The notes beneath the pieces are model-generated. The model had not been told where the DNA came from and searched no databases. It worked only from the letters and a program-made list of their open reading frames with translations. A stretch of 64,000 nucleotides of DNA, from positions 124,001-188,000 of IMG/VR virus record IMGVR_UViG_3300041402_000314; one strand, written 5' to 3'. A program made the translations under genes and the position numbers. Of the stretch, positions 1,520 to 59,229 are shown piece after piece; position 1 is the stretch's first letter; each line of letters starts with the position of its first letter.

Positions 1520-1522
1520 ATA

Positions 1523-1857: not shown

Positions 1858-1868
1858 AGGGGAATCAA

Positions 1869-2255
1869 ATGAAAATCATAGACAGGATAGACAATATTTT
1901 AAATGAAGCATCTAAAGAAATAGATGAGACTTCTGGTACTGAATTGGAAATGTATATAGAGAATGATAGCCAATTATATAGTCAACAATTTATTCCTATA
2001 GTAAAAAATCTGATGACTAAGAGAGCGCAGGGAAAATATGATAGTAAAAAGGCTGTTAAGCTCTTCATGTATCTTATGGAATCTGGAGCCAAGAAATATG
2101 TTAAGGATTTTGGCGGTACTTGGAATATAATGTTCAATAAGCCTACTAGAGAGTGGACAGCCAAAAGATTTGTGGAGAATTTCGATAACGAAGCCGAAAT
2201 AGGTGGTTACGATGAGTACATACCTAAAAAATATCAAAAGAAAGCTAAGAAATAG
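1869..2255 (+). CDS. Putative internal head protein
   Basis: Leader MKIIDRIDNILNE|A. Confidence 0.65.
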   Translation: MKIIDRIDNILNEASKEIDETSGTELEMYIENDSQLYSQQFIPIVKNLMTKRAQGKYDSKKAVKLFMYLMESGAKKYVKDFGGTWNIMFNKPTREWTAKRFVENFDNEAEIGGYDEYIPKKYQKKAKK

Positions 2256-2263
2256 GAGAAATA

Positions 2264-2992
2264 ATGAGAATCGTAGAGAAAATAGATAAGATATTAAACG
2301 AAGGTAAGAAGACAAAGATCAAGAAGCCGTCATGGAAGGAACTAAAGAAGCGTATCCAGAAACTTAAGAAGATAAAGTTTAAGAAACCTTCTAAGCCTAA
2401 GAATTCCATGACCATTACTAGCAGAATAAAGAAGAGTGCGAAAAAATTATTCAAAAGTCTCTTCAAAAAGATGAGATTAACAGAATCTAGTGATGCTAAA
2501 GTAAAAGCATTGGCTGATTTTAAGGAAGTAGAGACTGATGAAATCACTGATTTGAGTTATGGGTTTGAGGTTGATAGTGAAGAATATATGGTTCTTACTG
2601 ATTCAGAAGCGGATGATGCTACAAAGGAATATATAGAGGAAAGTATTTGGGCTTTTAACACAGATTTTCTTCTTGGTCAGATGACGTTAGCAGATGTCAA
2701 TAAATATTATGGTCTCGAAGATTCATATTACGATGAAGATACAGAAGAAGATGTCGAAATCGGTGATGATGAAGAAGTATTCTATATGGGTATGGGTATG
2801 ACATTAGAGGAATGGATTAAAGAAAAACAAGGCGAGTATGAAAGTGGTAATCAGGAATTACTTCGTCTCATAGATGATATCGATGAATTTGTAGAGGAAG
2901 CTATCAGATGGGATGGTAGAGGTCACTTCTTATCTTCTTATGATGGTGATGAGAATGAAGAAGGCGATTACTACATCTACAGAACAAATTAA
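2264..2992 (+). CDS. Putative internal head protein: basic segment followed by highly acidic domain
   Basis: Leader MRIVEKIDKILNE|G, Lys-rich stretch, second LTE|S site, D/E-rich C-terminal domain. Confidence 0.65.
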   Translation: MRIVEKIDKILNEGKKTKIKKPSWKELKKRIQKLKKIKFKKPSKPKNSMTITSRIKKSAKKLFKSLFKKMRLTESSDAKVKALADFKEVETDEITDLSYGFEVDSEEYMVLTDSEADDATKEYIEESIWAFNTDFLLGQMTLADVNKYYGLEDSYYDEDTEEDVEIGDDEEVFYMGMGMTLEEWIKEKQGEYESGNQELLRLIDDIDEFVEEAIRWDGRGHFLSSYDGDENEEGDYYIYRTN

Positions 2993-3006
2993 GGAGAACT
3001 TAGATA

Positions 3007-3234
3007 ATGGATATTACAGAAAAGATGGAAATAATGTTAGGTGAAGCTTTTGACGTGGAAGAGTTCGATGATGTCAAATCTAAGGCATCTAAGAAGCTCT
3101 TCAAGGTCGTAGAAATTTTAATGAAGGGCGGTGCAAGGGTATTCAAGTTAAGACCTCTTGAAGGCAAAGCTACGGCTTCTGATGAGTTTGATGTCGAGAA
3201 CAAGAAATTCTTTAAAGAATACGTGGCTGCATAA
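3007..3234 (+). CDS. Putative internal head protein
   Basis: Leader MDITEKMEIMLGE|A; RBS GGAG. Confidence 0.6.
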   Translation: MDITEKMEIMLGEAFDVEEFDDVKSKASKKLFKVVEILMKGGARVFKLRPLEGKATASDEFDVENKKFFKEYVAA

Positions 3235-3246
3235 GGAGAGGGAAAT

Positions 3247-3583
3247 ATGAGTATTATAGACAAGATAGATAATATCACTGAAGGTAGAGATACGAGAGGA
3301 GTTCTAACAAAAAGAATCGATTTCGAGAAATTAATTAAGAAGATAAAAGGCATGACTGCTAGAAATGATCATACTGGAGCCTATATATTAATTTCTTCTG
3401 AGATACTGAAAAAATAAGAAGCTGGTAAAGATTTTTACTGCTATAGAAGATATTACCAATGTCGATAATGGGATGTCGGGGAATCTCTCTAAATTTAGTC
3501 ATGAGAAATATCAAGAAATGATGAATCTAGTCAAAGCAAAATTAGATGACCGAGATTATCAAGCAATATACCAATCAACATAA
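3247..3583 (+). CDS. Putative internal head protein; frame breaks at A6 run 3409-3414
   Basis: Leader MSIIDKIDNITE|G; TAA at 3415, +1 frame continues NKKLVKIFTAIEDITNV...YQST to TAA 3583, just before the next RBS. Confidence 0.55.
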
Positions 3584-3591
3584 GGAGAACT

Positions 3592-3936
3592 ATGAGTAAA
3601 TTAATAGATAAGATAGAAAGTGTATTGAATGAAGCTAAGAAAAGAAAAGCCTCTTTCGGGAAAACCAAAGATATGAGTTATGCTGTCCAGATTGATAGCC
3701 TAGATAGTAATGATTTCTATACTCAGGCATTCGGTAGACAAATTAGCGATCTGAGGAAAGCGGATGAATTTATTAAAACAGCTAAGAAAGGTTATGTTGA
3801 TGGTAAAGGCAAAGCAACACTTCCTGCCGTCAGAAAATGGGTAAAGGAAAATCAGCCTTCAGAATTCTATGCTAAATGGAAATCAGATAGTTCTTGGTAT
3901 AAAGATGATAGCATAGAAATCTTTTATAAGAAATAA
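3592..3936 (+). CDS. Putative internal head protein
   Basis: Leader MSKLIDKIESVLNE|A. Confidence 0.65.
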   Translation: MSKLIDKIESVLNEAKKRKASFGKTKDMSYAVQIDSLDSNDFYTQAFGRQISDLRKADEFIKTAKKGYVDGKGKATLPAVRKWVKENQPSEFYAKWKSDSSWYKDDSIEIFYKK

Positions 3937-3944
3937 GGAGAATC

Positions 3945-4118
3945 ATGAATTTCAAAGATTATATATTAAACGAAAAATCTAAAGAAGCTTCAGAAGTTCT
4001 ACAGCTTATGGATAAGGACGAAGACGCTGATTATGGAAAGGCTTTAAAAGCTGTTCTGAAGAAGTATCCTAAAGTTGATAAAAAGGCTTTGGAAAAAGAA
4101 TTGAATAAATATATTTAA
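3945..4118 (+). CDS. Putative internal head protein (57 aa, not in ORF track)
   Basis: RBS AAGGAG; MNFKDYILNE|KSKEASEVLQLMDKDED... Confidence 0.6.
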   Translation: MNFKDYILNEKSKEASEVLQLMDKDEDADYGKALKAVLKKYPKVDKKALEKELNKYI

Positions 4119-4131
4119 GGAGATAGAACTA

Positions 4132-4359
4132 ATGGACATATTAGATAAGATAGACGCAGCACTAAACGAAGATTCAACTGAAAACGCAAAGAAAACCCTT
4201 CAAGCTATTATAGGTACTCTCAAGAAGTCTGAAGGAAAAGATAAGGATGAGATGCTAGATATGGCTAATGGTATAATGGATTACTACAAGAAAGAAAAAT
4301 CCTTTGCGCCTAAACAAGCCGAATGGATTTTCAATACCTCTAAAGCATTATTTAAGTAA
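4132..4359 (+). CDS. Putative internal head protein
   Basis: Leader MDILDKIDAALNE|D. Confidence 0.65.
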   Translation: MDILDKIDAALNEDSTENAKKTLQAIIGTLKKSEGKDKDEMLDMANGIMDYYKKEKSFAPKQAEWIFNTSKALFK

Positions 4360-4368
4360 GGATATAAA

Positions 4369-4581
4369 ATGGATATTATAGAAAAGATAGATGAAACATT
4401 AGAAGAAGCCACATCATCCGATGGTATAGATGTAAAGGGTTTACTGAATGATTTAAGAAAGGCCGAGAACAATATGAAACAATTAGCAAGTACGGTCAAT
4501 CATTTTAAACCCGGTAAAGTTAGAGCAGATGATTATGTCGAACCTATTAAAAATGCTGTTAAAAAATTAAAAGGTAAGTAA
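4369..4581 (+). CDS. Putative internal head protein
   Basis: Leader MDIIEKIDETLEE|A. Confidence 0.65.
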   Translation: MDIIEKIDETLEEATSSDGIDVKGLLNDLRKAENNMKQLASTVNHFKPGKVRADDYVEPIKNAVKKLKGK

Positions 4582-4593
4582 AGGATTAATACT

Positions 4594-4842
4594 ATGTCAA
4601 AGACATTCATAGAATACCTCTCAGAGGCTAGATTTGACGTTATAAGCAAAGAAAAAACAAAAGATGGGCGGAAGCTTCACCATACAGTAGAAATCGCCTC
4701 TAAGACGAAAATAGACGTTGATGATGTCGCTACTAAAGTTGGTTATCCTCCAATGGCTTATGGATTGTCAAAATCCAAGGTAACTAAACTGGATAATGGA
4801 AATTTTAAATATGAATGGGATTCTGCTTCAAATGCAGGATAA
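4594..4842 (+). CDS. Putative internal head protein
   Basis: MSKTFIEYLSE|AR, close to T4 IPII/IPIII MKTYQEFIAE|A. Confidence 0.65.
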   Translation: MSKTFIEYLSEARFDVISKEKTKDGRKLHHTVEIASKTKIDVDDVATKVGYPPMAYGLSKSKVTKLDNGNFKYEWDSASNAG

Positions 4843-4850
4843 GGAGAGAT

Positions 4851-5084
4851 ATGGATATAACTGAGAAGATAGATGTCATTCTCCTAGAAAACGAGCTAGA
4901 TGAGGGTATAAAAGAACTGGCAAAGAACGCTATAATCTCAGTATTGATAAGTATAGCAGTAATGGTAGGCGGTGGCTCACCAGTTAAATTAGCAGTCGAG
5001 AAGGCTCATAAAGAACATCGAGTTACGGATGTGAGTGTTGATCAGCTCGAAAAATTATATAAGTCAATAAAAACGAGGGTGTAA
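4851..5084 (+). CDS. Putative internal head protein (start revised from 4815)
   Basis: RBS AAGGAG before ATG 4851; leader MDITEKIDVILLE. Confidence 0.6.
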   Translation: MDITEKIDVILLENELDEGIKELAKNAIISVLISIAVMVGGGSPVKLAVEKAHKEHRVTDVSVDQLEKLYKSIKTRV

Positions 5085-5086
5085 GG

Positions 5087-5299
5087 ATGGATATTTTAGA
5101 TAAGATAGAAGAAGCTACAGAGAAAAAGAAATTCAATCAGAAGAAATTCTTCATGGCTTATAATAAAGCGTTTACTGTAATGAGAGATATAGTAAGTGAC
5201 CCTAAATTTGGGTTAGATATTGAAGATGCTAGAAAATTAAATAATATAGCTAAAGAATTTTATGATTCTTCTGAAGAAATATGGAAAAGAAATAAATAA
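5087..5299 (+). CDS. Putative internal head protein
   Basis: Leader MDILDKIEEATE|K. Confidence 0.6.
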   Translation: MDILDKIEEATEKKKFNQKKFFMAYNKAFTVMRDIVSDPKFGLDIEDARKLNNIAKEFYDSSEEIWKRNK

Positions 5300-6654: not shown

Positions 6655-6849
6655 ATGGATTCAGATATATTGGTTGATATGAGATCAAAGAAAATATTAG
6701 GCGGTTCCGCTTTCATACATAAGATAAAAGGTTATGTGATATGGAAAGTCTTGTCGATAGATAAGGCAGGAAAGATAAAAGATAATTTTACCTTCAAAGA
6801 CGAGATATTAGCCACTGAGAAATTCGAAGATATCACGGAGATCGATTAA
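6655..6849 (+). CDS. Hypothetical protein
   Basis: MDSDILVDMRSKK..., RBS AAGGG; track start 6625 overlaps upstream gene. Confidence 0.45.
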   Translation: MDSDILVDMRSKKILGGSAFIHKIKGYVIWKVLSIDKAGKIKDNFTFKDEILATEKFEDITEID

Positions 6850-8030
6850 TGTTTTCCAAATACTGCCTCTTTGGGTGTCCAGCCGCAACGTAATCTGGAA
6901 GCTATGACACCATACTTATTTCTGGATATTTCAGCCCATTCTTTCATGGATTTTTTATCACCATCTATAGTTAGACCTTTCTTTTTTCCATAGACTGCCT
7001 TTTCGGGAGACCAACCTATATTCATTCTCCCTCTAATTATTTCTGGGGTATTCCCAGAAAGTTCAGCCCATTCTTTTATAGTTTTAGTTTCTCCGTTGAA
7101 TGTTAAATATTTCTTAGTTTTATGTTCGGAAAATACAGCTTCCTTTTCAGACCATCCATTTCCCAATCTGGTATGTATAGTATTGAAATTAGTTCCAGAT
7201 TTATTAGACCATTCCTTTACGGTTTTAGTTACGCCATTTATTGTTAAATATTTCTTATTTTTATGTTCTGAAAATACTGCTTCTTTAGGAGACCAACCAG
7301 CTTTTAGCCTCCCTCTTATAGTATTAAAGTCTATACCAGAAAGTTCAGACCATTTTTTCACAGATTTAGTTTCACCCTCTACAGTCAGATACAATGTTAT
7401 TTTACATTCATCTCTTATTATTGTCTCGATTCGTTTGCGAATTTGTTCAGGTGATTATTTCTTACCAAATTGGGAATGTTTTTCACCTCTTTGGGAGTCA
7501 CTAATTAATTTCCTAGTTTCTTCAGAATGTGTTTTACCATACATACCATTTTTCTCACCAGATGACATTTCTGAATATCTCAGTCTTTCTTCTGGATTTT
7601 CAAAACGTCTGATTTGTGCCTTTCGTAATTTCTCTATGGTTTCTTCAGTCGGTATATACCCACAACATCCTTCACCTCCATTAGTCTTATTGAGCAAAGG
7701 CCCTAATCCCAAATCTACTCTACCTACCACTCTTATTATATATCTTTCTTTAGCAAAGGCTTCCTGTTCTGTTACATTTTCTAATATCTTGATTATTTTA
7801 GGCTCATAACCATCTTCTATTATTTCTCTAAGTAGATTTAATTTATCCGAATCAATATCTGTATTAATAGCATCTTTGGCATGTACTTCACATCTATCAT
7901 CAAGACCTTTACCTCCATAGATAGGAAGATAGTCTAGTGTTAATTTACCGCCATCATAAATGAAAGTACCTGTATGTCTTGGGTCTAATATTATATATGT
8001 ATAGAAAATAGGGTCTTCGGGATTGGTCAT
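6846..8030 (-). pseudogene. Free-standing GIY-YIG-like homing endonuclease (NUMOD3 plus 4 tandem DNA-binding repeats) split by one in-frame TAA
   Basis: 8030-7455: YTY..LDPR...IYGGKG..DR..H...E..L.N...GGEG and GKTHSEETRK; after TAA 7457-7455 the same frame continues SPEQIRKRIET... into 7394-6846 with four LTxxGETKT.KEW.E.SG....TI..R...GWS..EAV repeats. Confidence 0.75.
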
Positions 8031-8056
8031 GATATTGCTCCTTATATAAATAGATG

Positions 8057-8124
8057 TGAGAGGGACAGCAAGTAGATTGCTCCACTTGTTGCTAGGTAGT
8101 TCGTGCTATCTAGCTAACCTCTTA
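8057..8124 (+). ncRNA. Putative three-way-junction structured RNA, copy 1
   Basis: P1 TGAGAGG/CCTCTTA, GA, P2 CAGCAAGT/ACTTGTTG with GCTCC in loop, P3 CTAGGTAG/CTATCTAG, CTAA; starts 5 nt after TATAAATA 8045-8052. Confidence 0.55.
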
Positions 8125-8131
8125 TTATAAC

Positions 8132-8139
8132 TATTTATA
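8132..8139 (-). promoter_or_regulatory. T4-type late promoter for the GIY-YIG-like gene
   Basis: TATTTATA on + = TATAAATA on -. Confidence 0.55.
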
Positions 8140-9564: not shown

Positions 9565-10323
9565 ATGAGAACCTATTTTTTCCCAAATATTTTAAAAAAA
9601 ATACATATAGCTTTCCTTTCCCAATTTAAGGATTTGCAAGTAGCTAAATATGATAGTGCTGGTAATATACTTAATATGAGACAGGTTCCTATCACATTCG
9701 GACATAAAGGTAAGGAAATATCTATAGCTCAGAAGAAGGACAAAAGAAATTATTCAACTTTTTTGCCAAGAATTGCCGTGATGATGTCATCTATTAATCC
9801 TGCTCCTGAAAAGAGTAGAGGTGGTCATCTCGTAGAATTATGTAAATATACTACTGGTAGCGCAGATACCCTCCAGAAGTTATATGGTGGTTATCCATAT
9901 AAAATAGGCTATACTCTAACTATTCTTACCGAACATATGGGTGAGGCCAGTCAAATAATAGAACAGATATTACCTAGTTTTGTTCCATTTAAAAATGTGA
10001 CTATCAGGGAATTTGATTTTCTTCCTAGTTTCACTAGAGATATTCCTATATTATTAACTAGCGTAACTCCTACATTTCAAGATGAAACCACAGAAGATGA
10101 AATCAAGAGAATAGAATTCGATATTGAGTTTGATGTTGATTGTATGTTTTATAGACCTATACTCACTAGTGATATTATCAAAACCGTTAATGTTGATCTA
10201 ATTGATAGTTCTTTAGTTCCAGATATAACAGGAAATGATTTAGCTGGTTATGAATATGCTGTTAGTGGTGACGATATTGATGATTTTGATGTATTGACCG
10301 ATGAATGGACTGAATATATTTAA
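9565..10323 (+). CDS. gp15: Tail sheath stabilizer/terminator, T4 gp15-like
   Basis: YF...I...F...F.DLQV...VPITFG...LPRI...PY.I...L.I......QIIEQILPSF.P...RDIPI.L. Confidence 0.85.
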   Translation: MRTYFFPNILKKIHIAFLSQFKDLQVAKYDSAGNILNMRQVPITFGHKGKEISIAQKKDKRNYSTFLPRIAVMMSSINPAPEKSRGGHLVELCKYTTGSADTLQKLYGGYPYKIGYTLTILTEHMGEASQIIEQILPSFVPFKNVTIREFDFLPSFTRDIPILLTSVTPTFQDETTEDEIKRIEFDIEFDVDCMFYRPILTSDIIKTVNVDLIDSSLVPDITGNDLAGYEYAVSGDDIDDFDVLTDEWTEYI

Positions 10324-20600: not shown

Positions 20601-20923
20601 ACTCCCTCTAACTTATCTATAAGTTTCTGGTTTTCAAATATTTCAATATGTGGTGTTGTTTCATGTGGGCATACATCAGGAAGAATCAAAACCGAGTTAC
20701 CATGTTGTTCAAGAACTGCAAGCAATGCCTCTTGATTCCTCTTTAGAGCCTCTAACAATTCCAATGCTACAAGAGCGAGTCTATCTTTACCACCAAAACA
20801 ATTATCACAGTAACAATTTTCTCTTGCTATCGGTGTATCATCCTCATCGTATATGTCACTATACATTGGGTTACGTTTATCTTTATAACAAAGATCATCA
20901 TATAGTTTACTCATCACAACCAC
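20597..20923 (-). CDS. Hypothetical protein, first gene after an early promoter
   Basis: CYCDNC motif. Confidence 0.55.
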   Translation of the reverse strand: MVVMSKLYDDLCYKDKRNPMYSDIYDEDDTPIARENCYCDNCFGGKDRLALVALELLEALKRNQEALLAVLEQHGNSVLILPDVCPHETTPHIEIFENQKLIDKLEGV

Positions 20924-20944
20924 CTTTAATTAGTGTTTCAATTG

Positions 20945-20995
20945 ATTATGAGTACAGCTTATCACAGGTAAATATGAATGTCAAGAACTATTTTA
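20945..20995 (-). repeat. 51-bp promoter-containing direct repeat, copy A
   Basis: TTGACA-17-TAAGCT; 46 of 51 nt identical to 22238-22288 by hand alignment. Confidence 0.8.
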
Positions 20996-21862: not shown

Positions 21863-22207
21863 TTATGAAGTAATTCTACCAGCTTTCGAAGCGTCTTCAG
21901 CGTATATACTGAGAGGAAAGTTAAACGATGCGTACCTATCTCTTTCGACACCCAGACCAAATGGTGGGAATCTCATTGCTTCGAGTTCATCCCTAGAAAC
22001 GTATCCTAACTCAGGGAACCCTTGCCCAAGATCACAGAGACCGAAGAACATTCTGCTCTCCTCGTCATATTCCGTAATTAACCATGTACATGCTCCGCCA
22101 CCGAAAAACTTAACTACTGGTATGAAGTCAGACTCCCCACCAGACTCTTGATTGATCTTAGAGTTCCTAACCAGCTTATCTTCGATTATCTTAGTCATTA
22201 GTTTCAT
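21863..22207 (-). CDS. DUF2958-like protein
   Basis: PVVKFF.GGA.TWLITE.D.....FGLCDLG.G.PELGYVS..EL......G..VERD. Confidence 0.8.
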   Translation of the reverse strand: MKLMTKIIEDKLVRNSKINQESGGESDFIPVVKFFGGGACTWLITEYDEESRMFFGLCDLGQGFPELGYVSRDELEAMRFPPFGLGVERDRYASFNFPLSIYAEDASKAGRITS

Positions 22208-22237
22208 TTCGATCTCCTTTAATTAATGTTTCTCTTA

Positions 22238-22288
22238 ATTATGAGTACAGCTTATCATAGGTAGATGTGGAAGTCAAGAACTATTTTA
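22238..22288 (-). repeat. 51-bp promoter-containing direct repeat, copy B
   Basis: TTGACT-17-TAAGCT; see 20945-20995. Confidence 0.8.
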
Positions 22289-32183: not shown

Positions 32184-32781
32184 GTTCTACTTTTTCACAA
32201 TCATCGACCACTATTAAAGACACCTCATCATCTACAATATATCTATTCTTGTCTTCGAACCCCCATCCATACTCTATATCTTCTATGCCAATTATTCTAT
32301 ATGCTCTGCCTATTTTATCTTTATACCAAAAATTATCATTCGAACAATCTGTTATTTTTACCCAGAAAGGAAATTCAGGTTCCATATTCTCCAAAACCCT
32401 ATCAGCATATTCCTTCATTGATTCCTCTACGGCTGGACAGAGACGTGTCCATCCATTTTTACCATGAATAACATCTGACCCTAACTCTTTATTATTTCCA
32501 TCAACAAAGCATATGTCATCAACGCAATATTTGACAGTAAAATATTTATTACCATCTTTCTCCCACATTTCTTCTGCATCTTCTGGCCTTATCTTTTCAT
32601 CTTCGACATAAGGCAACCACTCGGTATTCATTATGGGATGTATAGATACCCTAAACGTCTTTTCATTAGTCCCATAATTAAACCAATAAAGGTCATCTTC
32701 GAATATAGTAACATATCCACCACAATCATCATTCACTGGAATAGCTTTCCCTGTTGGTATCAGGGCATCTTTAATATTCAT
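32176..32781 (-). CDS. Member of a three-copy paralog family (different C-terminus)
   Basis: MNIKDALIPTGKA, IRPEDAEEMWEK, IHGKNGW. Confidence 0.65.
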   Translation of the reverse strand: MNIKDALIPTGKAIPVNDDCGGYVTIFEDDLYWFNYGTNEKTFRVSIHPIMNTEWLPYVEDEKIRPEDAEEMWEKDGNKYFTVKYCVDDICFVDGNNKELGSDVIHGKNGWTRLCPAVEESMKEYADRVLENMEPEFPFWVKITDCSNDNFWYKDKIGRAYRIIGIEDIEYGWGFEDKNRYIVDDEVSLIVVDDCEKVERG

Positions 32782-33332
32782 TTCTTCTCCTCCGCTGGTA
32801 TTATGAGTATCATTTTCATAGGTGGTTTCATGGTTAATTCAGTATGTTGAAAGTAAGTCATATCACTTTTTGAATTGACTAAATCAGGATAGAAATAGAC
32901 TTCATTATGGATTTCTTTTCTTTTCCATTTTACCCCTTCAATCTCTATCCTCTCCACATTCTCATCTTTTACTTTGGGATATTCACGAATCCAACCGTCT
33001 TTGCTATGAATAGCCCTTGCTATACCCGTAACGCTCTGACCACTCTCGTTAACGAACTCTAATGAAGCACCAGAAATCCGAATAGTAAAATATTTATAAG
33101 CACCTCTCTTCCATAATTCAAATGCATTCTCAGGAACTATCTCTTCGACTTCATGGTATGGTTCCCAATCACCTTCTAAGATATCTAAGTGTCCGACTTC
33201 TCTATCACAAGCTCCTGATCTTACATCCACCCACCAAAGAGTATCATCAAACCATTTAACATATTCAACTTTTTCACCATCCAATACCAATACTACTTTC
33301 CCTGTTGGTTCTAAAGCATCTTTAATATCCAT
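32778..33332 (-). CDS. Member of a three-copy paralog family
   Basis: MDIKDALEPTGKV, EIVPENAFELWKR, IHSKDGW. Confidence 0.65.
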   Translation of the reverse strand: MDIKDALEPTGKVVLVLDGEKVEYVKWFDDTLWWVDVRSGACDREVGHLDILEGDWEPYHEVEEIVPENAFELWKRGAYKYFTIRISGASLEFVNESGQSVTGIARAIHSKDGWIREYPKVKDENVERIEIEGVKWKRKEIHNEVYFYPDLVNSKSDMTYFQHTELTMKPPMKMILIIPAEEKK

Positions 33333-33706
33333 TATTTCCCTCTCACTCTTTTCATTTTCTTAAATTTAAAGAATCCATACATTTCAGGATTTCTATATAC
33401 AACCAATCTAGCATATAAGGCTATCAGATCATTAGATAGCTTGAACTCACTACCTTGAGTCTCTATAGTCGTATACCATCTTATTCTTTGAGCAACCGCC
33501 CAATGACTATAGTGTTTCCTGCCTGTTTTAAATGCTTCTAAGGAAAACTTTTCAAATGATTTATAGATATCAGGATTCTTCTTATGATATCCCATAAAGG
33601 TTTTCATAAGCCCTTTATCTGCACCACCAAACAATTCCTGTTTTAATGTCAATCTCTCATTGGAGACTTTCATTTCTTCTCCAGAAGTTTTTGTGCGCCC
33701 ATCCAT
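33332..33706 (-). CDS. Phage hypothetical protein, paralog of 26513-26878
   Basis: F..YHKKNP.IY..F...S....GRKHYS...IRW...FKLSND....YARL. Confidence 0.65.
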   Translation of the reverse strand: MDGRTKTSGEEMKVSNERLTLKQELFGGADKGLMKTFMGYHKKNPDIYKSFEKFSLEAFKTGRKHYSHWAVAQRIRWYTTIETQGSEFKLSNDLIALYARLVVYRNPEMYGFFKFKKMKRVRGK

Positions 33707-35121: not shown

Positions 35122-35559
35122 TTACTCCTCGATCACATGTCTTTCAGTAAACAGCTCCATTGCCTTGTCCTGATCTTCCTGATAGAATATGATGGAGTCA
35201 GTAATCAAAAATAGATTACAAAGGAATTGGCCTAGTCTTATTTGAGGATGTTTAACAACATACTTAGTGAAATAAAGCTGGATAGCATCGGTATATTGTG
35301 TTTCATTGACTTTTGGATTCTCCATCATTATTCTCCATTCACAATCAGCATAGTGATTTTCGACTATACCATTAATTTCTGGTGCAGACCTTTTACAATC
35401 GGCACATCGCTGATATGGATTACCGCCACCAATTGGCTCGGAAGGATAATCAAAATTTAACTTTTTATCTTCAAACTTTTTGAATCTAACCTCGGCCTGA
35501 TAATCATCAGGATTAAAATGTCGGCTTTCCATATCACCACTCATAATACATTCCTCCAT
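35122..35559 (-). CDS. Hypothetical protein, first gene after an early promoter
   Basis: CADC...H...C motif; RBS GGAGG. Confidence 0.6.
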   Translation of the reverse strand: MEECIMSGDMESRHFNPDDYQAEVRFKKFEDKKLNFDYPSEPIGGGNPYQRCADCKRSAPEINGIVENHYADCEWRIMMENPKVNETQYTDAIQLYFTKYVVKHPQIRLGQFLCNLFLITDSIIFYQEDQDKAMELFTERHVIEE

Positions 35560-35571
35560 TATTTAAACCCT

Positions 35572-35623
35572 ATTATAACAGAATGGAACTCTTCTGTCAA
35601 GAAAAATCCTGAAAGTATAAATA
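35572..35623. promoter_or_regulatory. Back-to-back early (-) and late (+) promoters
   Basis: TTGACA-17-TATAAT on - (35572-35600); TATAAATA on + (35616-35623). Confidence 0.75.
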
Positions 35624-35663
35624 ATTAAAACATTAAGAACTATTATTTTAAGGAGATAGATTT

Positions 35664-37304
35664 ATGCCACAATTACTTTCACCCGATGTAAACATAGTCG
35701 AAAGAGATTTAAGTGCTTTTGTTGCGTCTGTAGCTACCAGTATAGCAGTATATGTAGGTAGGGCTACTAAAGGACCAGTATGGGAAAAGACACAGGTTTC
35801 CAATGAAAGACAGTTTGCAGAACTATTCGGTGAGCCGACATCAACTGATTATGAGGATTTTTTTACCGCTGCTGGATTCCTTCAGTATGGTAACACCTTG
35901 TATTACACAAGAGTCGTTGATACCGCAACTGCTAAAAACTCACAATTAAACGTAAGCACTGGTGCTGCTCCTTCTGCTGGAGATGGTGATTATGTTGCTG
36001 ATTGGGAAGAATATACGCCCTCATTCGGTGCTGAGAAAATGCAAGTGTACGCTAAGTATCCGGGAGCTTACGGTGACACTGATTTCAAAGTAGCAATGAT
36101 CAGTAATACAGATTGGGCTACTATAGGTACATCACCTACTCTCTCTGGTTATGAGTCTGTCATCGATCAAGGTCCAGAGCTTGCTACAGAATTCCTTGTT
36201 ATCGTATCTGCTCTACAGTCAGATGGAGAATATGAAATCCTCGAAACTTACCTTGTTTCTGATACCGAAGGAACTAAGGACTTCGAAGGCAATAACATGT
36301 ATGTCGATGAGGTCATTAATAAAGGCTCAAACTACATACTAGTATTCAATAATACTGGCGTGTCCGCTGAACTACAGTCGTTTGCTGAGACTGCTCCTGC
36401 TAATGGTGCGGACGGTGATATAAATGAAGCCGATATCGTACTAGGATATGATCTTTATGATAACCCTGAAGAAATCGAAATCAACTATGTGATAGGTGGT
36501 AGTCATACTACTGTTGCAACTGCAAATGCTATTCTTGCGCTATGTGTTGCAAGAGCAGACTGTTTTGCGATTCTCGATGTTCCTAAATCTGATGTTGTAG
36601 GTATTGCTAGTATTTCAACCGCTGTAAGTAATGTAGTAGACTATAGAAAGACGGAACTTAATGCTAATACTTCTTACGGTGCGCTATATGCTAACTGGCT
36701 TTATATCTATGATAAATATAACGATACAAACAGATGGGTTCCGAGTGGTGGTCATGTAGCTGGTATCTATGCCCATACTGCTAATGTAGAGGATGCATGG
36801 TTCGCTCCTGCTGGACTTAATAGAGGTATTTTGAGTAACGTTATTAAGCTGGCTATGAATCCGGGTAAATCTTATAGAGATACGCTATATAAGAATCAAA
36901 TCAATCCATTGGTTAGTTTCCCCGGTCAAGGAATTAGTGTTTGGGGTCAAAAGACTCTCCAGACTAAACCTTCTGCATTCGATAGAGTTAATGTTAGATT
37001 ACTCTTTCTATACATGGAAAAAGCTATTGGTAGAAGTGCAAAATATGTTGTTTTCGAACAAAATGATCAGCTTACTAGAAGTATCTTTAAGAACCAGATT
37101 GAACCATTCCTTGATGATATCAAAGGCAGAAGAGGTATATATGACTTCTTAGTATTGGTAGATGAATCCGTTAATACGCCCGAAAGAGTGGACAGAAATG
37201 AGTTTCATTGTGAAATTTTCGTAAAACCAGTTAAGAGTGCAGAATTTATCGTACTTCGTTTCACTGCGACAAAAACTGGTGTAGACTTTAGTGAGTTAAC
37301 TTAA
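35664..37304 (+). CDS. gp18: Tail sheath protein, T4 gp18-like
   Basis: SPDVNIVERDLS, GP, WFAPAGLNRG, RD.LY...INP, WGQKT, FDR.NVR.LF, FE.ND..TR, IFVKP.KS.EFI.L.F. Confidence 0.95.
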   Translation: MPQLLSPDVNIVERDLSAFVASVATSIAVYVGRATKGPVWEKTQVSNERQFAELFGEPTSTDYEDFFTAAGFLQYGNTLYYTRVVDTATAKNSQLNVSTGAAPSAGDGDYVADWEEYTPSFGAEKMQVYAKYPGAYGDTDFKVAMISNTDWATIGTSPTLSGYESVIDQGPELATEFLVIVSALQSDGEYEILETYLVSDTEGTKDFEGNNMYVDEVINKGSNYILVFNNTGVSAELQSFAETAPANGADGDINEADIVLGYDLYDNPEEIEINYVIGGSHTTVATANAILALCVARADCFAILDVPKSDVVGIASISTAVSNVVDYRKTELNANTSYGALYANWLYIYDKYNDTNRWVPSGGHVAGIYAHTANVEDAWFAPAGLNRGILSNVIKLAMNPGKSYRDTLYKNQINPLVSFPGQGISVWGQKTLQTKPSAFDRVNVRLLFLYMEKAIGRSAKYVVFEQNDQLTRSIFKNQIEPFLDDIKGRRGIYDFLVLVDESVNTPERVDRNEFHCEIFVKPVKSAEFIVLRFTATKTGVDFSELT

Positions 37305-37319
37305 GATATAAATATTTAA

Positions 37320-37377
37320 GGAAGGACAGTGGGTAGCTCCCATTGATGATGTGTTTACTCCATATCATCTTACTTCC
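37320..37377 (+). ncRNA. Putative three-way-junction structured RNA, copy 2 (5' leader of nuclease gene)
   Basis: P1 GGAAG/CTTCC, GA, P2 CAGTGGG/CCCATTG with GCTCC, P3 ATGATGTG/CATATCAT, CTTA; starts 6 nt after TATAAATA 37307-37314. Confidence 0.55.
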
Positions 37378-37407
37378 ATACATAACTTAAATAATGGAGT
37401 AAACATT

Positions 37408-38388
37408 ATGAAAGAAAAAATAATTTGTCATATTTGCTATAAAGAATTTAATTCTATTCTTAGTTTATCGAGACACATCAAACCCGCTCACAGTATATCA
37501 AGTAAAGATTATTTTGATAAATTTATCAAAAAAGAGAAAAGTGGTTTATGCTCAGTATGTTCAAATCCTACTCGTTTTGTTAATTTCGGTATAGGATACA
37601 AAAAATATTGTTCAAATAGCTGTCATAACAGAGATAAGAAAGCTCTGACAGATATAAGAGATGCACTTATCTATGAAGAAAAAATAAAAACCGAAACGAT
37701 AGTTTTTGACTGTGAGATTTGCGGATATAAAATTTTTAATAACTATCATGGTATTGGTTCTCATCTAAAACATAAACATAACTTATCTATACAAGAATAT
37801 TATGATAAATATTATTTAGAAAATATATTAGATAAGAAATGTAACATTTGTGACCGAGAAACATCATTTCGCTCTTTAGAAGTTGGGTATACTAAATATT
37901 GCTCTATTTCTTGTAGTAACAAGGAAGAGGTTAACATATTAGCAAGAAAGAAAGGTATAAATAAGAAAGAAGTAAAGGAGAGACAGTCTCGTAATTTATC
38001 ACAGAGAATTTTAAATGGGACTTTTAATCCATTCGCTAAAAAATTTAAAACTGGATATTTTTATTCTGAGAAAAATCAGAAAGATTTGTATTACCGTTCA
38101 TCATATGAATTAAAAGCATATCAAATGTTGGAACAGATGTCTTTAGTTAACATATATGAAACTGAACCATTTAGAATACCTTATAAGGATATGAAAGGTG
38201 TAACTAGAAATTATATACCTGATATTTTGATTATCTATGAAGATGGTATGAGAGAATTGGTAGAAGTGAAACCAGAAAATTTATTAAAGGATGAAACCAT
38301 TCAAATAAAAACAGAATCTGCCAAACAGTATTGTAAAGCCAATAACATGTCCTTTAATATATGGACTGAAAAATTCCTAGAACTATAA
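37408..38388 (+). CDS. Free-standing putative homing endonuclease: repeated Zn fingers plus TnsA-like PD-(D/E)xK domain
   Basis: CxxC...HxxxxH and CxxC...YC repeats; YRSSYE...EPF.IPY....Y.PD.......LVEVKP; start revised to ATG 37408 after GGAG. Confidence 0.75.
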   Translation: MKEKIICHICYKEFNSILSLSRHIKPAHSISSKDYFDKFIKKEKSGLCSVCSNPTRFVNFGIGYKKYCSNSCHNRDKKALTDIRDALIYEEKIKTETIVFDCEICGYKIFNNYHGIGSHLKHKHNLSIQEYYDKYYLENILDKKCNICDRETSFRSLEVGYTKYCSISCSNKEEVNILARKKGINKKEVKERQSRNLSQRILNGTFNPFAKKFKTGYFYSEKNQKDLYYRSSYELKAYQMLEQMSLVNIYETEPFRIPYKDMKGVTRNYIPDILIIYEDGMRELVEVKPENLLKDETIQIKTESAKQYCKANNMSFNIWTEKFLEL

Positions 38389-38391
38389 ATA
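38384..38391 (+). promoter_or_regulatory. T4-type late promoter
   Basis: TATAAATA. Confidence 0.65.
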
Positions 38392-38406
38392 ATTAAAAAG
38401 GATAAT

Positions 38407-38661
38407 ATGAGTACCATAGATAAGATAGATAGTCTATTAGAAGCGAAGAAACCTCTAAAAGGAAAAGTGGTGGACTTAGCTAAAAAATTCAAGAAAGGTG
38501 ATATTGTCAAAAGGAAAGATGGTAAGCCCTTTCTTGATACAGGAAGCCATGAATTAAATCCAGCATATCGACTAAAAGTACGTGATGTTGAAGAAGGTAA
38601 AATATGGATTGAATATTCAATCGGGTGGATTAACCCAGAAAAATTAATAAAAACCAAATAG
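38407..38661 (+). CDS. Isolated putative internal head protein
   Basis: Leader MSTIDKIDSLLE|A matches the 914-5299 array. Confidence 0.6.
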   Translation: MSTIDKIDSLLEAKKPLKGKVVDLAKKFKKGDIVKRKDGKPFLDTGSHELNPAYRLKVRDVEEGKIWIEYSIGWINPEKLIKTK

Positions 38662-38703
38662 AGTTAACATAAAAATATATAGATAAATAAGGAGAAATAA
38701 AAC

Positions 38704-39213
38704 ATGCCTTTCAATGTTTCAGAATTTAGAGCAAAAGTAAGGGATTTTGCTAGACAATACCTATTCGAGATGGAGATTCTTTTTCCACAACCAGTAGGTA
38801 AAGGCGAAATCGCTAACTGGACGGTAGAAGCGTCCGCAATACCCGGAAGAATCATCGAGCCAATTGATGTTCCTTTCATGGGACAGCAATATAAAATAGC
38901 TGGAATGGTGTCATATGACCCTTGGAATATAACCTTTAGAATGGATGATGGCTATGAAGTATATAAGCTTTTCAGAGCATGGTCTGAGTTAGTTCATGGT
39001 ACTGAGTCTAATATCGCTGCGTTCCCTGCACAATACAAGTCTAACCCGATTGTATACCAATTGGATTCTGCTGGAAATAGACTGAATGCAATCACTCTTA
39101 ACGGTGCGTGGCCTTCAACTGTTAGTGAAATCGCCATTACTCAAGGTGATTCTGCTGTACAGACATTTGATGTAACATTCGATTATGACTTCAGTAAATT
39201 TGAAGTCCTTTAA
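38704..39213 (+). CDS. gp19: Tail tube protein, T4 gp19-like
   Basis: FRA....ARQYLFE, A.IPG......VPF.G...K.AG...YDPW.ITF..D, F..WS, AWP..VSEI, TF.VTF.YD. Confidence 0.92.
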   Translation: MPFNVSEFRAKVRDFARQYLFEMEILFPQPVGKGEIANWTVEASAIPGRIIEPIDVPFMGQQYKIAGMVSYDPWNITFRMDDGYEVYKLFRAWSELVHGTESNIAAFPAQYKSNPIVYQLDSAGNRLNAITLNGAWPSTVSEIAITQGDSAVQTFDVTFDYDFSKFEVL

Positions 39214-39229
39214 TATCAACTAATAATTA

Positions 39230-39261
39230 CCTGTGAGGGTAGGCAATCTTACCCTCACAGG
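39230..39261. other. Strong hairpin after tail tube gene (terminator or processing site)
   Basis: Perfect 12-bp inverted repeat CCTGTGAGGGTA/TACCCTCACAGG; no U tract on + strand. Confidence 0.55.
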
Positions 39262-39327
39262 AATATTCTCTTCCCCCCATTACTTCCAGCTACACCCTCT
39301 GACGTAAATCTCTGCGTCCACTACCTA

Positions 39328-39353
39328 TATAAATAATTGAAAAACTATAAATA
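39328..39353 (+). promoter_or_regulatory. Tandem T4-type late promoters
   Basis: TATAAATA at 39328-39335 and 39346-39353. Confidence 0.65.
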
Positions 39354-39374
39354 CTTAAAATGGGAGAACTGTAA

Positions 39375-40130
39375 ATGAGTAAACTTGATGATGTGTTAAA
39401 TCATATGGAGGAAACCACCTATTCTTTTAATGTACCGCTACTTAGTAACAAGAAAGAAAAGGTAGAGTTTAGACCTCTTAAAACTAAAGATCAGAAATTA
39501 TTGGCGGTAGAAGGTGCTGATGGAACGAGTAAATTTGATAATTTCACAATAATGCTCAAACTTCTCGATAGCTGTCTCCGTAAAAACAAAACATCTCTAG
39601 GTAGTATGCTACTGGAAGATTTTTATTGGTTGATTATAAATCTAAGAATAAAGTCTTTGGGTAACACACTGGAATTATATGGTACTTGCGAACAATGTAA
39701 TACTAATAAAATTCCTTTCGTATTAGATTTGGAAAAGGATATGGAGATAACTTATTTAGACGGTATCAAGAATAACGAATTAAAAATATCCGATAAATTA
39801 ACTTTATTCCTTAAGCACATATGCCTTGAAGACATGTTAGAAATTCTTAAAAGAGAAGAAGATACTGATGGCGGTGGTATGGAATTATCACTGGCTTACA
39901 TGATTGATTATATAGAATTTAATGAAGAGATAATCGATGTAGATAATACCGATAGTAGAATAGCATTGATGGATGAATTATCTGCTGATCAATTAAAGTA
40001 TTTTAAAACATTCCTCGAAGAAAATGCTTTTGGTATGAAAGTAAAAAAGAGTTTCAAATGTACTAATGAAAAATGTGGAGAGGAAACTAAAGTAGAATTA
40101 GAAGGTTTTGATATAATTGATTTTTTTTAA
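39375..40130 (+). CDS. gp26: Baseplate hub assembly protein, gp26-like
   Basis: FRP.K.KD.K.L, LRIKSLG...EL...C..C, C-terminal C....CG...LEG...DFF. Confidence 0.8.
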   Translation: MSKLDDVLNHMEETTYSFNVPLLSNKKEKVEFRPLKTKDQKLLAVEGADGTSKFDNFTIMLKLLDSCLRKNKTSLGSMLLEDFYWLIINLRIKSLGNTLELYGTCEQCNTNKIPFVLDLEKDMEITYLDGIKNNELKISDKLTLFLKHICLEDMLEILKREEDTDGGGMELSLAYMIDYIEFNEEIIDVDNTDSRIALMDELSADQLKYFKTFLEENAFGMKVKKSFKCTNEKCGEETKVELEGFDIIDFF

Positions 40131-40309
40131 TAACTGTTCAAGGCGAAGTGACATTTGAAGACCTCTTATATGAAATACACTATCTAAGTACCCATTGTAA
40201 TATGGATTCGAGGTATGTAGAGAATCTACCTATATTCGAAAGAGAATTCCATATACACACACTAATAGCTAGATTAAAGAAGGAAGCTGATGCCAACGAA
40301 GGAAAGTAA
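40121..40309 (+). CDS. gp51: gp51-like hub assembly ORF in the -1 frame (frameshift product or GTG 40148 start)
   Basis: FFLITVQGEVTFEDLLYEIHYLSTHCNMDSRYVENLPIFERE...; LP.FER resembles gp51; not in ORF track. Confidence 0.6.
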   Translation, partial: FFLITVQGEVTFEDLLYEIHYLSTHCNMDSRYVENLPIFEREFHIHTLIARLKKEADANEGK

Positions 40310-41945
40310 AGAAATAGGGAAAGAAATTAAGAATGCCTTTAAAGTGCCGTCTGAAGAGATGGTTAAAGTCATTACTGAAATCAATAGGACTACAGAGAAT
40401 AAAATTGCCGATCTATCGAAATCGCAAAAAACGTTCTTAAAGGGTTTTGTTGAAAAAGAATCTCCTCTATTAGACAAAACATTCAAATTCTTCAAAGAAG
40501 GTAAGAAGCGAGAAAAAATAAAGGCGATTCTACAGGCTAAGACTATGGGACCAGTAATGGTGAAAGGTCTTTCTCTCGGTCTACTTAAATTCGGAATTGG
40601 TGGTGCTTTAGGCGCAGCTAAAATATTTGACGTAACTGAAAAATATCAGGATTATGTTAAAGATGCGGATGCCGAGAAAAAACAAGAAATGGTTAACCTT
40701 GTCGATGAATTGAGAAGTGGTGAAAATCCTAAGACTATGGAAGAGATCGAAAAGACCTTGAAGAAGCAAGGTGTTAAGGGCTTCGAGTTAACTGCTATCA
40801 TGAAGGATTATTCTAAGATACTCGATGATCGCATGAGGGAAGTAGTTACTCAGGGTCTTGAATCTAAAAAAGAAACAAATTCGATTCTTTCCGAACTAGT
40901 AGAAAAAGGCGTTATAAGTAAAGGAGATTTAAAAGCTCAAGAAGATGTTAAGCTAAAAGTTCAAAAGGCTAAGAAGAAACAAATACCTGCTACTAAAGTA
41001 GAACAGAAGACTTCCGATACTCTCCAGAAATTAACCAATGTAACTGGTGTTGTTGGTGACGAGAATAAAGAAAAATTAGTCGAGATAGCTCAAGCCATAG
41101 ATAAGAATCGTTATGAGATTGTTAATGTACAGGAATATCTTAATTTGATGGTCGATACTCAAAAAGATAGTAATAAAGTAGCTATCGAGAGAGCGACCAT
41201 TGACGATAAGAGATTAAATCTCGAAAAGCAAGTAGAACAGAATGATCAACTAAGACATCTCGAACTTATGAAAGCTGGTGAAGATGGTGGAGATGGTAAG
41301 GGTGGTCTATTTGAAGGCTTCAAGGGATTTAAAACAGCCTTATCAAGTGCTATTCCTCTTATAAAGGGTTTGGGTACTGCTGGTCTAGTTGCTGGTGCTG
41401 CATTTGCTGGATTTAAAATTGGTGGGGAAATCAATAAAGGTATTAATAGTATGGTCTCTTTCCTAACTGGTAAAGAAGGTGATACATTTGGTGGATGGTT
41501 ATATGATATAACTCATCCTAGCGAAGATAGAGTTGAAGTAGAAGCAAAAGCTGGAAAAAAGACTACTGGTGTTATAGCTGAAATGAATGAACTTAGAAAG
41601 ACATTTGGTTCTGGGTTTCAGAGAAAATTAAAGGCTCGTGGATATACAGGACCGATGACTCGCAAATCAGTTACCGAGTTCTTTGAATCTCAAAAGAAAC
41701 CTTCCCTTCAGAAAGAAGTGGAGAAAGCTGAAGCAACAAAGATTAAAATGGAAAAGGAACGCAAACAAAAGGAAATGGCTATATTTGAGAGAATGTCAGA
41801 TGAAGATGCCATTAGTGCAATAACAGCAAAAGCATTGGCTGAGATGAATATTAATGTGGGCGGTGGCGTTAGTAAATTGGATAAGATACCTTCCAATTCT
41901 GATGATCTACCACTAGCATATGCAGCTAAAGGAGGAACTTCTTAA
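40290..41945 (+). CDS. Probable tape measure / hub protein (gp29-like position)
   Basis: 551 aa coiled-coil, Gly/Ala hydrophobic stretch GLGTAGLVAGAAFAG; between gp51 and gp48. Confidence 0.65.
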   Translation: MPTKESKEIGKEIKNAFKVPSEEMVKVITEINRTTENKIADLSKSQKTFLKGFVEKESPLLDKTFKFFKEGKKREKIKAILQAKTMGPVMVKGLSLGLLKFGIGGALGAAKIFDVTEKYQDYVKDADAEKKQEMVNLVDELRSGENPKTMEEIEKTLKKQGVKGFELTAIMKDYSKILDDRMREVVTQGLESKKETNSILSELVEKGVISKGDLKAQEDVKLKVQKAKKKQIPATKVEQKTSDTLQKLTNVTGVVGDENKEKLVEIAQAIDKNRYEIVNVQEYLNLMVDTQKDSNKVAIERATIDDKRLNLEKQVEQNDQLRHLELMKAGEDGGDGKGGLFEGFKGFKTALSSAIPLIKGLGTAGLVAGAAFAGFKIGGEINKGINSMVSFLTGKEGDTFGGWLYDITHPSEDRVEVEAKAGKKTTGVIAEMNELRKTFGSGFQRKLKARGYTGPMTRKSVTEFFESQKKPSLQKEVEKAEATKIKMEKERKQKEMAIFERMSDEDAISAITAKALAEMNINVGGGVSKLDKIPSNSDDLPLAYAAKGGTS

Positions 41946-58423: not shown

Positions 58424-58441
58424 CTACCGACTCCTTTGTGA

Positions 58442-58449
58442 TATAAATA
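58442..58449 (+). promoter_or_regulatory. T4-type late promoter of the glycosyltransferase cluster
   Basis: TATAAATA. Confidence 0.7.
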
Positions 58450-58473
58450 ATTAAAATATCACAAAGGAGTCTT

Positions 58474-59229
58474 ATGTCTGATCAAAGAGTTTCCATTATT
58501 ATCCCGAATAAAAATAGTTATGAAATGTTAAAGGATTGCATTGATTCTATTTTCCTTACCACCTCTTATCCCAACTACGAGATAGTCATTGTAGAAAATG
58601 GGTCAACAGAGGAAGATATATTTGAGTATTATGAAATCTTGAAAAAGAATCATAGTAATCTCAGAGTATTCACCTATAAAGAACCTTTCAATTTTTCCGC
58701 TATAAACAATTTTGCTGTCCGACAAACAAACAGTGAATTCCTGTTATTTCTCAATAATGATACCAAAATAATCAATGAAGATTGGCTAATCGCTATGGTT
58801 CGCATTCTTAAGAATAAAAAGAATGGCGTAGCTGGTGCTACTCTCCTTTACGATGATGATACTGTCCAACATGCAGGAATAGCAACAGACCCTAAATGGA
58901 TAGCATACCACATCAACCATAAAATTACAAGAGAAAACATTCCGACTAAATCAATGACGGTTGATGCTGTTACTGGCGCATGTTTATTAACTACAACCGA
59001 TATATTCAATAAGGTGGGTGGCTTCGATGAGAACCTTCCTATTGCATATAATGATGTCGATTTCTGTCTAAAGGTAAGAGATAGAGGCTACAAGATTAAA
59101 TGGACTCCGAATTCTCTACTATATCATTACGAATCTAAGACAAGAGGATTGGATGACGGAACAGAGAAGAGAGCTAGACTTAAACGTGAATCTGAATACA
59201 TGAGGTCAAAATGGAAGACAAAACTTTAG
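58474..59229 (+). CDS. Glycosyltransferase family 2
   Basis: VSIIIP, VENGS, FNFSAINN, LFLNNDT, AVTGACL, GGFDE.L..AYND.DFCL. Confidence 0.92.
   Translation: MSDQRVSIIIPNKNSYEMLKDCIDSIFLTTSYPNYEIVIVENGSTEEDIFEYYEILKKNHSNLRVFTYKEPFNFSAINNFAVRQTNSEFLLFLNNDTKIINEDWLIAMVRILKNKKNGVAGATLLYDDDTVQHAGIATDPKWIAYHINHKITRENIPTKSMTVDAVTGACLLTTTDIFNKVGGFDENLPIAYNDVDFCLKVRDRGYKIKWTPNSLLYHYESKTRGLDDGTEKRARLKRESEYMRSKWKTKL

Follow-up and report, generated by a model that had tools for sequence, protein, structure and literature searches.

A previously undescribed and strongly conserved small three-armed RNA travels with selfish nuclease genes in T4-like phages and carries a loop matched to the ribosome-binding site (RBS) of its own nuclease, so that it most likely holds translation of that nuclease down. 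The leader examined here, copy 2, lies between the tail-sheath and tube genes in a 64,000-nt window (bases 124001-188000 of the 204,149-bp IMG/VR record IMGVR_UViG_3300041402_000314), which comes from a marine sediment metagenome and represents a distant T4-like myovirus. The initial annotation had described a late promoter, a junction fold shared with a second copy (copy 1), and a 12-nt arm complementary to the RBS of a PD-(D/E)xK nuclease gene, and each of these features is confirmed. Its interpretation, a ligand-responsive or read-through-dependent two-state translational switch carried by a portable RNA module, is only partly supported, as the anti-RBS role and portability are well supported by comparative evidence, the switch is plausible on thermodynamic grounds alone, and a ligand is unsupported.

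The three-way junction RNA family

Copy 2 folds as a three-way junction (3WJ) with P1 formed by GGAAG/CUUCC, a 6-bp P2, and a 9-bp P3 (Table 1). The 3WJ is the minimum free energy (MFE) structure of 37320-37380, at -22.1 kcal/mol with z = -3.45, and 0 of 200 shuffles fold as well; copy 1 has an MFE of -27.2 and z of -3.77. Since the T4 late promoter box spans -13 to -6 (PMC1524935), the predicted +1 falls on the first base of P1 in both copies. The 12-nt arm of copy 2 is the exact reverse complement of the segment holding the Shine-Dalgarno (SD) sequence GGAG, which lies 8 nt before the ATG. Perfect 12-nt inverted repeats with a 15-120-nt loop are rare, with 15 in the whole 204-kb genome against 1-5 in shuffled genomes. 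The downstream gene encodes C2H2 zinc fingers and a TnsA-like PD-(D/E)xK domain (PF08722, E 7e-16), with PHROG hits to phrog_15427 (endonuclease) and phrog_3339 (homing endonuclease). Its finger at residues 6-28 begins at the same residue as in a related protein of copy 4, which supports ATG 37408 as the true start.

Table 1. Features of the copy 2 and copy 1 loci, in window coordinates.
Position	Strand	Feature
35664-37304		Tail-sheath gene (Pfam and PHROG sheath hits); TAA stop at 37302-37304
37305-38686	+	Indel cassette between sheath and tube genes: late promoter, 3WJ RNA, nuclease gene, second late promoter, and 84-aa ORF
37307-37314	+	T4-type late promoter box TATAAATA; predicted +1 at 37320
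37320-37377	+	Copy 2 of the 3WJ RNA: P1 37320-37324 with 37373-37377; J12 GAC 37325-37327; P2 37328-37333 with 37339-37344; P3 37345-37353 with 37361-37369; J31 UUA 37370-37372
37352-37363	+	Anti-RBS arm TGTTTACTCCAT: the 7-nt P3 loop plus 2 and 3 stem bases
37394-37405	+	RBS segment ATGGAGTAAACA; SD GGAG at 37396-37399
37408-38388	+	Free-standing homing-endonuclease-like gene (326 aa): C2H2 zinc-finger repeats plus C-terminal TnsA-like PD-(D/E)xK domain
38407-38661	+	84-aa ORF inside the indel block, with its own TATAAATA at 38384-38391
8045-8052	+	Late promoter box of copy 1; on the other strand it lies directly next to the SD of the divergent GIY-YIG gene
8058-8123	+	Copy 1 of the 3WJ RNA; P2-loop anti-SD ATTGCTCC at 8076-8083
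8132-8139	-	Opposite-strand late promoter box firing back through copy 1 towards the GIY-YIG gene; predicted +1 at 8126
7455-8041	-	GIY-YIG/NUMOD3 homing endonuclease gene (ATG 8030-8028); SD region GGAGCAAT at 8041-8034, complementary to the copy 1 P2 loop

A BLAST search of copy 2 against the window found no sequence repeat, and the family was found only through a structure descriptor, with which a scan of the whole genome identified seven copies. A covariance model built from the six copies other than copy 2 recovered copy 2 over the full model length at 43 bits (E 1e-8) and nothing else, while copy 1 scores 81.6 bits. Pattern scans followed by the model yielded at least 14 more distinct copies in other viral or metagenomic contigs, including five in one complete 248-kb IMG/VR phage and five in metagenome contigs; most of the 80 metagenome pattern hits returned as loci were chance matches, and only 7 passed the model. 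In an alignment of 16 distinct sequences, 97.3% of cells are standard pairs and 18 of 21 pairs show changes on both sides, which 0 of 500 column shuffles reach, whereas slid controls reach only 32-50% paired. RNAalifold independently gives the same structure. The invariant features are the GAC and UWA junctions and a G.U at the second pair of P2, and copy 2 shares this P1-GAC-P2-P3-UWA-P1' architecture, including the G.U, along with a late promoter box 5-7 nt upstream.

Rfam 15 gave no hit in the window at the gathering threshold and none on the element at E up to 10, which includes the c4 antisense RNA family (RF01695), and ARAGORN detected no tRNA or tmRNA genes in the window. Literature searches, including ones aimed at such an RNA, found no description of it. 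Megablast of the locus against GenBank phages gave no match, and the nearest sheath proteins are under 40% identical there and at most 51% identical in IMG/VR. None of the 80 sheath-relative loci contains the element, so it does not follow phage phylogeny closely.

Contigs of related phages from other sediment and cold-seep metagenomes were compared with 35400-40400. In two runs, designated X2 and X3, contigs join 37304 to 38686/38687, skipping 1381-1382 nt with 9-11 other letters between, such that the sheath gene is followed directly by the tube gene, and depth across 37404-38572 is far below the flanks. A contig from a further run, X4, joins the end of the tube gene (39188, plus 32 diverged letters that still end in a stop codon) to 37306. 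The same cassette, beginning at its TATAAATA, therefore sits after the tube gene in that relative. Thus, the late promoter, the 3WJ, the nuclease, and the 84-aa ORF form one indel unit, which supports the portable module proposed in the initial annotation.

Loop complementarity to the cognate Shine-Dalgarno region

Six of the seven genome copies share one layout. The fold is preceded by CTCCTTATATAAATA and followed by TATTTATA, the latter being a late promoter box on the other strand that points back through the fold. CTCCTT is the reverse complement of the SD of a gene on the other strand, which starts 26-36 nt to the left of P1. This divergent gene encodes a GIY-YIG/NUMOD3 homing endonuclease at copies 1, 5, 6, and 7 and a 123-aa C2H2 zinc-finger protein at copy 4, while at copy 3 it is an 11-codon remnant. 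In the other phages, the divergent genes are EndoVII/HNH-type endonucleases or a zinc-finger/DUF7487 homing endonuclease. The predicted +1 sites of copy 1 would give two RNAs that overlap by about 69 nt, each beginning with the junction fold or its complement.

In nearly all copies other than copy 2, the RNA is antisense to the 5′ leader of the divergent endonuclease gene and its P2 loop is complementary to the SD region of that gene, an arrangement that the initial annotation missed and that constitutes the main point. The four bases beyond the GGAG/CUCC core covary, as seen in the pairs of SD region and P2 loop GGAGCAAT and ATTGCTCC, GGAGCTAT and ATAGCTCC, GGAGTAAG and CTTACTCC, GGAGTAAT and ATTACTCC, GGAGTGAT and ATCACTCC, GGAGTTAT and ATAACTCC, GGAGTGGT and ATCACTCC (one G.U), and GGAGCCGT and ATGGCTCC (one G.U). 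In the pair designated L118, the SD core itself has changed, to GGGTTAT against ATAACCC. Cognate matches run 5-9 nt, with 11 of 19 being 8 nt and with six different perfectly matched 4-nt extensions, although five cognate pairs have only 6 nt of complementarity and the pair designated L178 has only 5; two mismatches are G.U-compatible. Across 18 unique pairs the summed complementarity is 131, whereas re-pairing loops with non-cognate RBSs gives a mean of 98 and a maximum of 115, and 0 of 20,000 permutations reach the observed value. The predicted duplexes are -9 to -12 kcal/mol. Because the antisense promoter box sits between them, the SD lies outside the sense/antisense overlap, and this complementarity is therefore not a trivial consequence of antisense transcription.

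The GGACAG...CUCC strand is favored as the functional one, with 31 G.U cells against 3 A.C cells, though most of the G.U cells come from the conserved P2 pair. MFE values do not separate the strands, as the reverse strand folds about as stably (mean MFE -21.3 against -20.4). Copy 2 has a promoter box only on this strand and lies within a plus-strand late operon. Two further possibilities were rejected, namely a conserved upstream ORF on the endonuclease strand, since a TTG start occurs in copy 1 but is not conserved in the other copies, and P1′ acting as an anti-SD on the endonuclease mRNA, since it is not conserved in the other phages.

Copy 2 is an atypical member, being in sense orientation upstream of its nuclease, with a shortened P2 whose CUCC is partly in the stem and an anti-SD, now 12 nt, in P3. 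A relic in P2, TAGCTCC, matches the RBS type of copies 4 and 6. As the only sense-oriented member with the anti-SD in P3, its cis arrangement has no comparative support of its own, and a back-translated search for the nuclease in IMG/VR found no relatives. The full 12-bp helix (-15.5 kcal/mol) requires the top three pairs of P3 to open, whereas a contact through the 7-nt loop alone is worth -5.7 kcal/mol. The claim that P3 and the anti-RBS helix are mutually exclusive thus holds for the full helix but not for a loop-only contact.

For the late transcript 37320-37425, the 3WJ/open state is -27.5 kcal/mol and the anti-RBS state is -24.6, a difference of about 3 kcal/mol. With the 5′ end at 37320 or upstream by one or two bases, P1 forms (p 0.96) and the SD is 0.73 unpaired. 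With the 5′ end at 37321, or with bases up to 37321 held single-stranded as by a ribosome terminating on the sheath stop codon, the anti-RBS helix dominates (p 0.82-0.86) and the SD is 0.03-0.06 unpaired. Several read-through transcripts favor the closed state, partly because the promoter region can form a hairpin that takes the first bases of P1, and the anti-RBS helix is present in the MFE of the 37200-37440 transcript. However, the P1 5′ arm is still present in read-through RNA, so predicted discrimination between the two transcripts is weak, and the outcome depends heavily on the ends chosen: read-through from 37150 or 37280 stays open, and with a 3′ end at 37470 the SD is mostly paired in every transcript.

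Models of nuclease control and related systems

The favored explanation, with a probability of roughly 0.58, is that copy 2 belongs to a new family of 58-67-nt 3WJ RNAs, each starting at +1 of a T4-type late promoter and carried in free-standing homing-endonuclease cassettes of T4-like phages, and each displaying a loop complementary to the SD region of its own endonuclease gene and so limiting its translation. In the usual layout, the RNA and the endonuclease mRNA would come from face-to-face late promoters, with the P2 loop pairing in trans with the SD just outside the overlap. In copy 2, the anti-SD would act in cis from P3. Transcripts that start at 37320 can close P1 and keep P3 shut, leaving the SD mostly free, whereas perturbation of P1, either on read-through RNA from the strongly expressed sheath gene or by a ribosome terminating at its stop codon, would allow the anti-RBS helix to win so that the nuclease is not translated. 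The analysis establishes the family, its fold, the covariation of loop and SD, and the mobility of the cassette, while promoter use, the transcript ends, the repression itself, and the switch are inferred from sequence alone.

A simpler reading, possible though less likely, is that the element is a constitutive damper, in which the 3WJ always forms and its P3 loop (the P2 loop in other copies) simply kisses the SD, lowering translation on all transcripts without an alternative fold. In all other copies the complementarity lies wholly inside a loop and no stem has to open, the 3WJ is the MFE of the late transcript, and cotranscriptional folding would close P3 before the SD is made. However, the match in copy 2 extends 2 and 3 nt into the P3 stem, the loop-only duplex is weak, and a 7-nt loop cannot pair fully for steric reasons. 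A role only as a 5′-terminal stabilizer or insulator of late transcripts, or as a PeSL-like repeated DNA module promoting recombinational shuffling of cassettes, is unlikely. It would fit the start of P1 exactly at the predicted +1 in copies 1 and 2, as paired 5′ ends stabilize bacterial mRNAs, as well as the position of the RNA as the 5′ leader of a rightward gene in copies 2, 3, and 6 and the shuffling mediated by repeated promoter modules in T4-like phages (PMC4122927), and would leave the 12-nt complement of copy 2 without regulatory effect. Yet it does not explain why a loop covaries with the SD of the neighboring endonuclease in about 18 independent pairs, or why the elements are found next to endonuclease genes rather than next to late genes in general.

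That the functional RNA is instead the opposite strand, an endonuclease mRNA leader with an SD-like decoy or standby site in its loop, and that the GGACAG strand is not made, is improbable. Six of seven copies have a late promoter box firing through the element towards the endonuclease, and the strands fold with similar stability, but the G.U to A.C ratio and the single forward-strand promoter of copy 2 argue against this reading, a standby site would not need the four bases after GGAG to match the real RBS, and in the copy designated c6 the TATAAATA keeps its distance to P1 while the SD is shifted 9 nt away. Least likely is a riboswitch whose junction binds a metabolite and frees the RBS. Though the junction nucleotides GAC and UWA and the G.U at the base of P2 are conserved, the element is only about 60 nt with a minimal junction, has no Rfam match, and lacks a conserved expression platform, since the cis anti-RBS exists only in copy 2 and most copies are antisense to their gene. 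RNA binding by the zinc fingers and an effect on nuclease targeting, both raised in the initial annotation, are likewise without evidence, and association with four nuclease folds argues against a specific RNP partner.

Among known systems, the RBS-sequestering hairpins with late promoters of T4 homing endonucleases (I-TevI, I-TevII, I-TevIII, segB, and Aeh1 mobE) also involve a selfish nuclease gene in a T4-like phage, an SD that can be occluded by an upstream complementary arm, and a TATAAATA promoter just upstream, with translation presumably restricted on read-through RNA (PMC2988022). In T4, however, the late promoter lies inside the hairpin so that late RNA lacks the 5′ arm, whereas in copy 2 the promoter lies upstream of both arms, the anti-RBS is embedded in one arm of a conserved 3WJ, and in most family members the anti-SD would act from a separate antisense RNA. 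The I-TevI scheme invoked in the initial annotation is therefore not supported in the strict sense. The same phage does use classical T4-style hairpins elsewhere, at window 58430-58471, at genome 78770-78817, and upstream of a zinc-finger/NUMOD3 endonuclease at genome 64415, showing that RBS occlusion is part of its regulatory repertoire.

By mechanism, the family most resembles IS10/Tn10 RNA-OUT and type I antitoxin RNAs. IS10 likewise has face-to-face promoters at the 5′ end of a transposase gene and a small stable structured antisense RNA whose loop pairs with the translation initiation region, but there the RBS lies within the overlap and the fold is a single hairpin, whereas here the antisense promoter sits between the overlap and the SD and a separate loop copy of the anti-SD is maintained by covariation. 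Copy 2 has no opposite-strand box after the fold, while six other copies do, by sequence motif only. Sib/Ibs and Hok/Sok type I systems similarly occur as several paralogous copies per genome, each antisense RNA matching its own potentially harmful gene through short covarying segments, though the targets here are homing endonucleases in a lytic phage and there is no evidence for post-segregational killing. The best analogue of copy 2 is the c4 antisense RNA of phages P1/P7, a structured RNA encoded upstream of its target in the same operon that represses downstream icd/ant (Citron and Schuster, 1990). The loops of c4 pair with the downstream RBS region. No sequence or structure match to c4 was found, and c4 is processed by RNase P and controls immunity genes, not a homing endonuclease. 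PeSL cassettes are also short repeated modules at indel boundaries in T4-like genomes (PMC2839356, PMC4122927), but they combine an early (sigma-70) promoter with a terminator-like stem-loop in hyperplastic regions. The present element has late-type boxes (TATAAATA/TAAATA) on both sides, a covarying 3WJ, an anti-SD loop, and a tie to endonuclease genes, with no U-tract after the fold and no terminator-like site before 39187.

Free-standing homing endonucleases must be kept at low, late expression to persist in phage genomes, and so far only cis hairpins, promoter choice, and autorepression are known in T4 (PMC2988022). In the broadest reading, which is about as likely as not, endonuclease cassettes in a broad group of environmental T4-like phages carry their own taming RNA, a late-promoter-driven 3WJ sRNA with a reprogrammable loop that specifically blocks the RBS of the cognate endonuclease, in trans from an overlapping antisense promoter or in cis when the module is inverted, as in copy 2, and that has been exchanged among at least four unrelated nuclease folds. 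It would be the first antisense-RNA control system described for homing endonucleases and a compact, naturally reprogrammable anti-SD scaffold for translation control, and the family gives a ready set of natural compensatory variants. A conserved, mobile RNA module with a loop that tracks the SD of whichever nuclease it accompanies would add a well-supported new structured RNA family from phages and a new layer of control, and would show how such cassettes can land in either orientation next to highly expressed genes, here between sheath and tube, without harm.

Hairpins at ribosome-binding sites and further nuclease genes

A classical T4-style arrangement is also found within the window, where GACTCCTTTGTGAT and ATCACAAAGGAGTC form a 14-bp hairpin around a TATAAATA box, sequestering the SD of the gene that starts at about 58484. 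A second example, and a third lying upstream of a zinc-finger/NUMOD3 endonuclease, are located elsewhere in the genome, outside the window. In addition, two HNH genes outside the window lie among what look like tRNA genes, and a second TnsA-like gene is present at a separate site, though none of these three genes has the three-way-junction (3WJ) element upstream.

Coordinates of additional features of the phage genome (window, numbering of the 64,000-nt stretch; genome, numbering of the whole virus record; L082 and L083, loci holding copies 3 and 4 of the 3WJ RNA)
Feature	Window	Genome	Locus
T4-style hairpin around a late box	58430-58487
Second T4-style hairpin		78770-78817
Third T4-style arrangement, upstream of a zinc-finger/NUMOD3 endonuclease		64415
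Multi-copy small-ORF family	1500-5120 and 38407-38661
Copy 3 with mutated box		75159-75339	L082:3160-3340
Tandem units of about 141 nt	6846-7397 (minus strand)
Bidirectional terminator-like hairpin	39230-39261
Sigma-70-type promoter beside copy 4		82809-82863	L083:3310-3364
First pair of paralogous segments	20911-20995 / 22204-22288
Second pair of paralogous segments	32536-32787 / 33084-33338
Leader not aligned in one relative	37304-37407
Two HNH genes		7876-8007 and 10058-10219
Second TnsA-like gene		105938-106267

Repeated segments

A multi-copy family of small ORFs, corresponding to the repeat families designated D1, D3, D4, and D9, has N-termini that read M-x-I-I/L-E/D-K-I-D/E-x-x-L-N/E-E, and the 84-aa ORF inside the nuclease cassette begins the same way (MSTIDKIDSLLEAKK). 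Next to the GIY-YIG gene of copy 1 of the 3WJ RNA, four tandem units that are 63-78% identical lie inside a 182-aa minus-strand ORF (repeat families D2 and D5). Two pairs of diverged paralogous gene segments, 72-84% identical, also occur in the window, which suggests local gene duplications.

Transcription signals and variation of the cassettes

Directly after the tube gene lies a strong terminator-like hairpin of 14 pairs, 8 of them G-C, which is the only convincing terminator in 36800-39400. Between copy 4 and an NAD-dependent DNA ligase gene lies a perfect sigma-70-type promoter (TTGACA, 17 nt, TATAAT), and thus that rightward gene is early and independent of the late promoter of the element.

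Among the metagenome contigs aligned to 35400-40400, one relative's contig from the run designated X3 aligns up to 37304 and again from 37407, but not across the 102-nt leader, and this relative may carry the nuclease behind a diverged or different leader. Copy 3 differs in that its box is mutated (TATAAGTA) and only an 11-codon remnant remains where the divergent endonuclease should be, while on its right side the TATTTATATAAGGAG motif serves as the RBS of a 181-aa gene with no Pfam hit. Copy 3 looks like a decayed cassette.
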